A stretch of 64,000 nucleotides of DNA. Source: Auanema rhodensis (taxonomy: Eukaryota > Animalia > Nematoda). The notes beneath the pieces were generated by a model that did no database searches, was not told the origin of the DNA, and saw only the letters and a program-made list of their open reading frames with translations. Below, piece after piece: positions 5,687-8,600 of this stretch. The stretch spans positions 15,376,001-15,440,000 of the forward strand of contig OZ059897.1 in the NCBI GenBank assembly GCA_964057225.1. Reading direction: 5' to 3'. The stretch's first letter is position 1. The number at the start of each line of letters is the position of its first letter. Position numbers and translations under genes: made by a program.

Positions 5687-8600
5687 TTAGTTGTACAAAT
5701 CATCATCATCGTTACCACCGGCAGGAGCAGCAGCTGGATTAGATGAATTCTCACCAGGGAACTTGAAGTTGTTTCCAAAACCACGCTGTTGCTGCAGAGT
5801 TTGGGCAAAGAGCTCATACCTTAAAAAAATATTATCAATATATAAAAGATTAAAAACTTACTTTCTAATATCATTATCAGAAACAGAACGTCTAGCAAAC
5901 TTCATAGCTTCTTCAAAGTGACCACGGGTAATTTCAGGAACAGGATCGCTTCCTTCGTCTTCCATTAACTCTTCACCCTTAGCCTGACGCTCTTGTCTCT
6001 CCTTCTCTAACTTGATATCCTTTTCGATAGACTCACGAATAGCAAGCTTGCAAGCTCTTCAAAATTTTAAAAAATAAATATGTCATGGACAGATTCAAAC
6101 CTCTGGCAAATTTCTGTGATATCAGCTCCAGAGAATCCTACAGTACTCTTAGCCAAGAAAGTCATATCAACATCTTTGCCGACAGGAGTCTTGCGAAGAT
6201 TAGATTTGAAAATTTGGAAACGAGAAGCTTCATCGGGGAGAGGGATATAGATGAGCTGATCAAGACGTCCAGGACGAAGAATAGCAGAATCAATGATATC
6301 GGGTCTAAAACAAAATATAACATAACTCTACGGGCTAACTACACAAACCTGTTTGTAGCTCCGATGATGAAAACATTCTTCTTGGAGTTCATTCCATCCA
6401 TTTCGGTAAGAACTTGATTGATCACACGATCAGCAGCTCCTCCGGCATCCCCAACAGAACCACCACGAGCCTTGGCAATAGAATCTAATTCATCGAAGAA
6501 GAGAACACAAGGAGCAGCAGCACGAGCTTTATCGAAGACATCTCTTACGTTAGCTTCCGATTCTCCGAACCACATGGTTAAAAGCTCAGGACCCTAAAAA
6601 TGTACTCATTAATTAAGAGAATCCAAAAACTAAAGACGCAGGCATGTCACGAGGAATTGAATAGACTTAATAGAGATGTCATATAGCACAAAAATGACAC
6701 TCAAAACAGCATATACAACAATCACATGTTCAATAAAAACAAAACGTTTTGAAAAGAAAAGTAATATGTTGACCAACTGTGTTAAGCTCTTAAGATGTGC
6801 AAAGAAAAAAAATTAGTCTTACAAACCTTGATGGAAATGAAGTTAGCTTGGCATTCATGAGCAATAGCCTTGGCAAGAAGAGTTTTACCACATCCAGGAG
6901 GTCCATAGAAGAGTACACCACGAGATGGTTGCATACCGAACTTAAGGAACTTCTCGGGATGAGCGACAGGGTATTGAACAAGCTCTTGAAGTTCTCTCTT
7001 GACATTTTCAAGACCTAAAATGTTTATCATTAGCATATATGCATATTTTATCAGCTAACAGGTCCACGAAAATGAGCACTTAAATGCAATGACCAAATCA
7101 TTTGGCGCAAATACGACACTCGATAAAAAATGATTAAGAATAGTTTAAAATTTCAAGTGCAAAACGCTGATGAAATAATAGACCATCTTAAATTTTTATC
7201 AAGCTCTTAAGTTGCGCGATACCCGAGAATAGTCGAAAAATAAAGTCATACCTCCAATATCTTCCCAAGTAGTGTTAGGAGTCTCAACAACGGTTTCACG
7301 GAGAGCAGATGGAGAAGATTTGCCCATAGCGAACTAAACAAAACTATCAAAAATGAATTAAAATAGGTATCGTACCCTAAAGTTCTCCATGGTAACGGCA
7401 AGAGAATTTAAAACCTCAGCATCGATGGTATCGTCTTCCAAATCAATGAGTTCCATCTTCTCACGAATTTGTTGAAGAGCAGCCTCAGAGCAGAGAGAAG
7501 CAAGATCAGCACCAACATATCCATGACACTCGTTGGCAATTTGTTCGAGATCAACATCTTCCGAAAGCTTCATGTTTTTAGTGTGGATTCTTAAGACTTC
7601 AAATCTTCCGACAGCATCTGGGATTCCGATATCAATTTCTCTTTAAAATATAATGTTTATAAAAATTTGAATATATTTAGTACCTATCGAATCTACCAAA
7701 ACGACGTAATGCTCCATCAATAGCATTTGGACGATTTGTTGCAGCAATAACGACAACGTGAGAACGCTGCTTCAATCCATCCATAAGAGTGAGAAGTTGG
7801 GAGACAATTCTTCTTTCAACTTCACCGTGAGTCTAGAAAAACAATTTTTTTTCTTCAATAACAGCTTTCTTACCTTCTCTCTCTTGGGAGCAATAGCATC
7901 AATTTCATCAATAAAAAGAATAGCTGGAGAATTTTTTTCACATTCCTCAAAAGCCTTACGAAGATTGGATTCTGATTCTCCGGCCAACTTAGACATAATC
8001 TCGGGACCTGAATGTATAAAGTGATATTTATAGTACATTTGAATTATTACTACTAACCGTTAAGAAGGAAGAAGAAAGCACCAGTCTCATTAGCAACAGC
8101 TCTAGCAATGAGAGTCTTACCAGTACCAGGAGGACCGAAAAGAAGGATTCCTCTAGGTGGTTTGATACCAATTGCCTTGAACAACTGTGGATGTCTCAAA
8201 GGAAGCTCAACCATTTCCTTGATTTGAGCCAATTGTTTGCGAACCTGTAAATATTAGGGTTATATGTTCAAATTTATCCAACATACTCCTCCAATGTCAT
8301 CATATCCAACATCATTCATGTTCTCTTCTTCTTCCTCTCTCTTAATAGCTTCTCCTTCGTAATGAATAACAGTATCAGGAGCAACTATGCAAGATGGAGA
8401 AGGATCCGTTTCAACAACCTATAAAAATTTTAATAAAATATTTAATATTCAAAAATGAAAACCTTGAATTCGACAGTTCTCATAGCAGCTTGAACAGTGA
8501 AGATATCACCCTTATGAAGAGGTCTGTAAGCTTCAACGAAATATGGCTTGAGGAAAACCTCAAAAAGATTTCTTAAAAATAAAGCTTTAAATATATCCTA

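Follow-up and report, generated by a model that had tools for sequence, protein, structure and literature searches.

Human SNORA53 (ACA53) is an intronic H/ACA RNA whose long 5' hairpin guides Psi3747 and Psi3749 of 28S rRNA, a role that has been proven experimentally (Jady et al. 2022, PMC8763049). Its CCUUAGA element pairs with UCUUAAGG and a downstream element pairs with AUGAC (A3742-C3746), the H box is 14 nt away from U3747, and no conserved guide is present in the 3' hairpin (PMC8763049). In the mutant U13+A, Psi3747 is kept and Psi3749 is abolished (PMC8763049). The general rule for H/ACA RNAs is that the target U and the next nucleotide stay unpaired between two flanking antisense helices, 14-16 nt from the box (PMC8763049). 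In yeast, snR3 guides 25S Psi2129, Psi2133 and Psi2264, the adjacent Psi2266 is guided separately by snR84, and the helix 69 Psi site affects ribosome structure and drug response (PMC2794176). Among Caenorhabditis snoRNAs, 78% are nested, 29% have paralogues, and 16 duplications stand against 16 losses of duplicates (Wang and Ruvinsky 2012, PMC3342880). Here we describe two adjacent introns of a cdc-48 gene in the nematode Auanema rhodensis, referred to as introns A and B. Judging from their sequence and folding, they likely each carry one copy of a paralogous H/ACA snoRNA pair, about 200 nt long and in sense orientation, and we expect with similar confidence that at least one copy would be a working guide.

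The locus lies in a window of 64,000 nucleotides (64 kb) of contig OZ059897.1, and all coordinates refer to this window. A domain search placed AAA, AAA_lid_3 and AAA domains in the region's minus-strand gene, its exon fragments resemble 'transitional endoplasmic reticulum ATPase' at 80-97% identity, and homologous loci also bear CDC48_N and CDC48_2. This domain content and similarity identify the host as cdc-48/p97. In four RNA runs belonging to a single study, the assembled contigs show that both long introns are spliced out from the minus strand with GT..AG ends. Intron A (7015..7251, minus strand, 237 nt), for which spliced contigs were present in all four runs and the GT..AG ends were read directly, lies between the DIGG and LENVK codons. 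Intron B (6594..6826, minus strand, 233 nt, from spliced RNA contigs) lies between ISIK and GPELL. The 188-nt exon between them (6827..7014, minus strand), defined by RNA contigs and the domain search, covers the Walker A region of the D2 AAA domain. The remaining five cdc-48 introns within positions 6000-8000 measure 41-44 nt in the RNA contigs, which bears out the earlier observation of two adjacent introns of about 235 nt among short ones. The cdc-48 mRNA contigs have a depth above 1000 (>1100x as spliced mRNA next to intron B). No stable small RNA is visible among the contigs, a type of data that speaks neither for nor against one. An unspliced 290-nt contig (6566-6855) spanning intron B was assembled from runs X1 and X2 at about 4x depth, or about 0.4% of the cdc-48 mRNA depth; among the contigs of the four runs, intron A and the short introns have no unspliced equivalent.

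Two other features of the region were noted. At 7731-7929, 4/4 RNA runs contain a second contig, 90-95% alike there. Its 141-nt 'joint' has the non-canonical borders GA..CA, and its ends are unmatched over 255 nt; rather than an alternative splice form, this contig probably represents a paralogous cdc-48/AAA transcript. Just downstream of cdc-48, a minus-strand ORF at 4527-4796 is rich in GGY/GYGG repeats (...GYGYGYPGGFGGYGYPGGYGGYPGGYGGYGGYGGYGGYP...) and resembles nematode glycine/tyrosine-rich secreted peptides.

Introns A and B share two blocks, which are present as quoted in the sequence-only reading of this DNA: GCGCAACUUAAGAGCUUGA against GCACAUCUUAAGAGCUUAA, identical at 16/19 positions, and GAGUGUCGUAUUUGCGCCAAAUGA against GAGUGUCAUUUUUGUGCUAUAUGA, identical at 19/24. 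When either intron was folded separately (MFE), the same 5' hairpin was obtained, consisting of a closing stem, an internal loop and a long upper stem, and in these independent folds the conserved blocks form the two strands of the pseudouridylation loop. The closing stem P1 comprises 5-6 bp (GCGCAA/UUGCGC in A, GCACA/UGUGC in B), with the covariation from G-C to A-U that had been pointed out before. The internal loop is symmetric, with 7+7 nt in copy A and 8+8 nt in copy B, and the upper stem begins GCUUG/CGAGU in A and GCUUA/UGAGU in B. Both copies thereby display the 5' hairpin of the H/ACA class, with an internal pseudouridylation loop between proximal and distal stems. Compared with dinucleotide shuffles, the copy A hairpin is far more stable (z = -5.37, 0/200 as stable), and that of copy B is also more stable than nearly all (z = -2.53, 1/200 as stable).

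The class-defining H box, ANANNA, is found in the hinge 1 nt past P1 in both copies, as AAAUGA in A (7098..7103, minus strand) and AUAUGA in B (6679..6684, minus strand). From the target scan and the element coordinates, it starts exactly 14 nt past the first loop nucleotide of the 3' strand in each case, in agreement with the spacing from the top of the pocket that the sequence-only reading had given. Measured from the closing stem to the ACA box plus 3 nt, on folds and element coordinates, the predicted snoRNA of copy A covers about 200 nt (7018..7217, minus strand) and that of copy B about 203 nt (6598..6800, minus strand). They are sense to the host, with 26-34 nt separating them from the 5' splice site and 3-4 nt from the 3' one. 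This placement, within spliced introns of an expressed host and with no space for a promoter of their own, is that of intron-processed snoRNAs.

The H/ACA model is weakest at the ACA box and the 3' hairpin. The ACAUUU end expected from the earlier reading was found in both copies (7018..7023 in A and 6598..6603 in B, both minus strand, from direct reading and element coordinates), and in copy A only UAG follows before the exon. In the two introns, ACA is followed by UUUUAG or UUUUUAG to the intron end, 6-7 nt before the 3' splice site, and the shared tail YUAAUGA..ACAUUUUAG could owe its conservation to a branch point and the signals of the 3' splice site rather than to an ACA box. The 3' hairpins are 68-71 nt long, with the ACA 1-2 nt beyond them. 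In the folds, that of copy A (7026..7093, minus strand, about 68 nt) has a 10-bp basal stem with one bulge, and that of copy B has a basal stem of 3 bp with a 4-nt bulge. Their stability equals that of shuffled sequences (z = 0.07 for A, -0.80 for B), and their internal loops, of just 2-4 nt, are too small for a second guide. Both copies thus show the sequence features of the H/ACA class except a convincing 3' hairpin.

The guide strands were compared with an LSU target motif (AUGACUCUCUUAAG; AACUAUGACUCUCUUAAGG) that comes from published rDNA and not from the Auanema rhodensis genome; an Rfam search found no LSU rRNA in the 64-kb window. The motif belongs to a region in which ATGACTCTCTTAAGGTAGCCAA, the I-PpoI site, has been described as a highly conserved rDNA sequence and AACTATGACTCTCTTAAGGT is in use as an evolutionarily conservative 28S primer. 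In copy A, the 5' guide strand CUUAAGA (7205..7211, minus strand), which the MFE fold leaves unpaired as a 7-nt loop strand, is the complement of LSU UCUUAAG, and the 3' guide strand GUCGUA (7112..7117, minus strand) pairs with LSU UAUGAC through one G-U, giving 7 bp and 6 bp, respectively. In copy B, CUUAAGA (6788..6794, minus strand) forms 7(-9) bp and GUCAU (6694..6698, minus strand) pairs with LSU AUGAC over 5 bp. These assignments come from the target scan, together with element coordinates for all four strands. The orientation is canonical, the 3' strand of the loop covering the rRNA on the 5' side of the target U and the 5' strand the rRNA on its 3' side, and in both copies UC stays unpaired at the top of the loop with a 14-nt spacer to the H box. 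Both copies therefore pair with the published motif in the manner of the class, and the proposed pairing of GUCRU with AUGAC and CUUAAGA with UCUUAAG around an unpaired UC is confirmed against it. A table in PMC2794176 equates E. coli 1915 and 1917 with yeast Psi2258 and Psi2260, and counting on from these positions, the U after AUGAC is yeast 2264 and human 3747 (PMC2794176). The predicted equivalence of the target to yeast Psi2264 thus holds by this numbering; its placement at the base of helix 69 is not strictly right, since the uridine lies in the helix 69 stem.

A consensus structure derived from the two introns contains 21 pairs, all of which are standard in both copies (21/21), and 7 of them are changed on both sides. 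When the 3' partners were slid by 1-3 columns as a control, pairing fell to 40-55%, with 0-2 compensated pairs. As this count comes from two sequences and a structure derived from the same two, it is supportive and not decisive. By direct reading, 8/8 differences within the conserved blocks fall at tolerated positions, namely stem pairs that are compensated, sites in the spacer or distal in the loop, an N of the H box, and a guide position where G-U takes the place of A-U. A plain local alignment of introns A and B is not significant (126/1000 shuffles reach its score), so homology rests on the colinear blocks and the structure. A gapped alignment of the 3' halves contains the colinear short motifs UUAAGU, UCGUG, CCUG, UUAG, UAAUGA and ACAUUUU, which suggests that introns A and B are paralogous over their full length. 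If they are duplicates, the guide, stems and boxes would have been kept selectively, which argues for function. Two further interpretations of the 5' hairpins were rejected: a miRNA hairpin, as the upper-stem sequence is not conserved, and a dual-site Psi-N-Psi pairing, for which the second register requires a U-U mismatch and is without a stable distal stem.

We consider it improbable that the resemblance to H/ACA RNAs is fortuitous, arising from AT-rich structured hairpins or a MITE-like inverted repeat with a chance match to rRNA. The unremarkable 3' hairpins, the non-significant direct similarity of A and B and the lack of an Rfam match would all fit such an origin. It was weighed with a scan for one target, in which the 5' and 3' guides had to form at least 6 and 4 bp, respectively, and 11 or more together. 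The scan also demanded an adjacent distal stem and a proximal stem, each with a minimum of 4 bp, and a box at 13-16 nt. On both strands of the window (128 kb), copies A and B were the sole matches. Loose candidates for a given site arise by chance at about 0.16-0.2 per shuffled window (128 kb). Across 1000 shuffled windows, 3 matches reached the quality of the weaker copy (0.003 per 128 kb), a rate to be read against about a hundred sites that could be chosen after the fact. The two matches lie side by side, in sense, in the gene's only two long introns, and they address the same known and conserved pseudouridine in the pairing register of SNORA53; a chance origin of such a combination is very unlikely. 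As for an inserted repeat, blastn of both introns and a covariance model of the 5' hairpin found no further copies in the 64-kb window, which gives no sign of a repeat family.

The hairpins might act in cis on the splicing or intron retention of cdc-48 instead of guiding in trans, which we regard as very improbable. The 3'-terminal conserved block does overlap the 3' splice site and a YUAAU motif that resembles a branch point, and an unspliced contig covers intron B, but that form accounts for the small fraction of mRNA depth given above, and a cis role leaves unexplained both the bipartite rRNA complementarity with its 14-nt spacing to an ANANNA box and the upper stem, whose sequence varies while its pairing is kept. 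Somewhat less remote, yet still unlikely, is that only one copy works as a guide, the second being a duplicate in decay (a snoRNA pseudogene) whose 5' hairpin still looks intact. Copy B would be the candidate, being weaker in its 5' hairpin (z = -2.5 vs -5.4) and in its 3' basal stem of 3 bp with the 4-nt bulge, and Caenorhabditis snoRNA duplicates are lost as often as gained (16 vs 16, PMC3342880). However, all guide nucleotides, both boxes and the 21 stem pairs are kept in both copies, with 7 compensatory changes, whereas the remainder of the introns has diverged to background similarity, and this contrast points to selection on both copies. The reading of both introns as H/ACA snoRNAs is supported, with every sequence-level element that had been proposed for it verified.

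Searches for known families gave no match. The Rfam search that had been suggested for both introns recognised no family: none at gathering thresholds in the 64-kb window, nothing at E <= 10 in 1 kb, and unrelated noise only in 216-219-nt slices at E <= 10. By Rfam covariance models, the introns thus match neither SNORA53 nor snR3 nor any curated H/ACA family, nematode families included. A tRNA scan found none. A two-block pattern gave 28 chance-level matches in metagenome contigs, 0 of them H/ACA-like.

Relatives' cdc-48 loci were found through exon-sized ORF fragments in public assemblies from about eight other source samples. No orthologous copy of the predicted snoRNAs was found in these loci. 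The 5'-hairpin covariance model found no copy in 12 cdc-48 loci, and pattern, scan and covariance model together found no helix 69 guide in the fetched loci. One minus-strand covariance-model match in locus L005 (E = 0.47) was judged to be noise, and pattern matches in L010, L006 and L044 were coding or non-hairpin and attributed to chance. Locus L001 has both intron positions in common with Auanema rhodensis cdc-48; its intron B is 76 nt long, and the 137 nt that can be seen of its intron A do not resemble intron A of Auanema rhodensis. The remaining fetched loci have introns at positions other than those of L001. In L005 (934-1167; also in L003 and L004), an intron of at least 235 nt was seen between ISIK and G, the position of intron B; in L005 it has no recognisable helix 69 guide, and the contig ends within the intron. 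A metazoan-wide intron between ELVQ and YP occurs in about 90 cdc-48 ORF fragments from many animals and is absent here (site at about 6975-6980); intron A sits 36 nt upstream of this site, between DIGG and L, a position common only to L001. With no helix 69 guide in the fetched loci, cdc-48 as a snoRNA host looks lineage-specific among the sampled relatives. In the literature, no open paper names a snoRNA together with C06A1.1, C41C4.8 or cdc-48, the catalogue PMC1464110 lying outside the scope of this statement.

From the introns, blocks, folds, complementarity and compensatory changes, all directly shown here, we infer RNA accumulation, RNP formation and modification along the following route. 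The intron would be spliced and debranched, and exonucleases would degrade it as far as the part that dyskerin, Nop10, Nhp2 and Gar1 protect. The loop of the 5' hairpin would pair with 26S rRNA, GUCRU(A) with (U)AUGAC and CUUAAGA with UCUUAAG, such that, at a distance of 14 nt from the H box, the UC dinucleotide stays unpaired beneath the upper stem. The unpaired U, equivalent to yeast Psi2264 and human Psi3747 in the helix 69 stem, would then be isomerised to pseudouridine. The 3' hairpin would probably contribute to RNP assembly and stability only, as reported for SNORA53. Given that the 5' guide is perfectly complementary and leaves no bulged rRNA U, as in U13+A, we predict a single-site guide and not the dual Psi-N-Psi guide of humans, in which case the neighbouring U would have a separate guide or no modification.

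If real, the pair would supply a nematode guide for one conserved helix 69 pseudouridine, add two genes that are invisible to protein-based annotation, and offer a clean example of guide duplication, with the copies in neighbouring introns of a host whose mRNA is abundant. A bolder scenario, which we put forward as speculative and doubtful, is that a whole snoRNA intron was copied from intron to intron in a lineage that lost the ancient ELVQ/YP intron and carries the DIGG/L intron 36 nt upstream, and that the copies are a natural single-site version of SNORA53. Should the intron-to-intron copying be true, nematode introns may be gained or kept because of the snoRNAs they carry.

Compared with described systems, the predicted RNAs are probably an ordinary, known type of intron-processed H/ACA guide, apparently uncatalogued. 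Nested and duplicated snoRNAs are common in Caenorhabditis, so the pair probably fits a known kind: it shares with nested Caenorhabditis snoRNAs the sense strand, short introns, expressed hosts, small paralogous families and occasional duplication, and differs in that the two paralogues here occupy adjacent introns of one host gene. In function, the pair is probably the counterpart of yeast snR3 and of the SNORA53 5' hairpin, by analogy of target. With snR3 it shares the equivalent helix 69 stem uridine and single-site guiding there; in contrast, snR3 guides three sites, and no sequence or model match between it and the worm RNAs was found. It is not known to be intronic in cdc-48. The likeness to SNORA53 extends to closely similar antisense elements, the pairing register, the 14-nt spacer, the intronic location and a similarly long 5' hairpin, although the hosts differ (SLC25A3 in humans, cdc-48 in the worm) and, as no Rfam covariance model matched, homology is unproven. 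The main points are the duplication in adjacent introns and the natural single-site form of a human dual guide, the rest being routine snoRNA biology. Human CCUUAGA bulges rRNA U3752 and so permits a second register and two pseudouridines, whereas worm CUUAAGA pairs perfectly, like the SNORA53 mutant U13+A. The worm guide would thus resemble an engineered SNORA53 mutant without dual-site activity and, if real, would allow the 'guide RNA acrobatics' model to be tested on a natural case.
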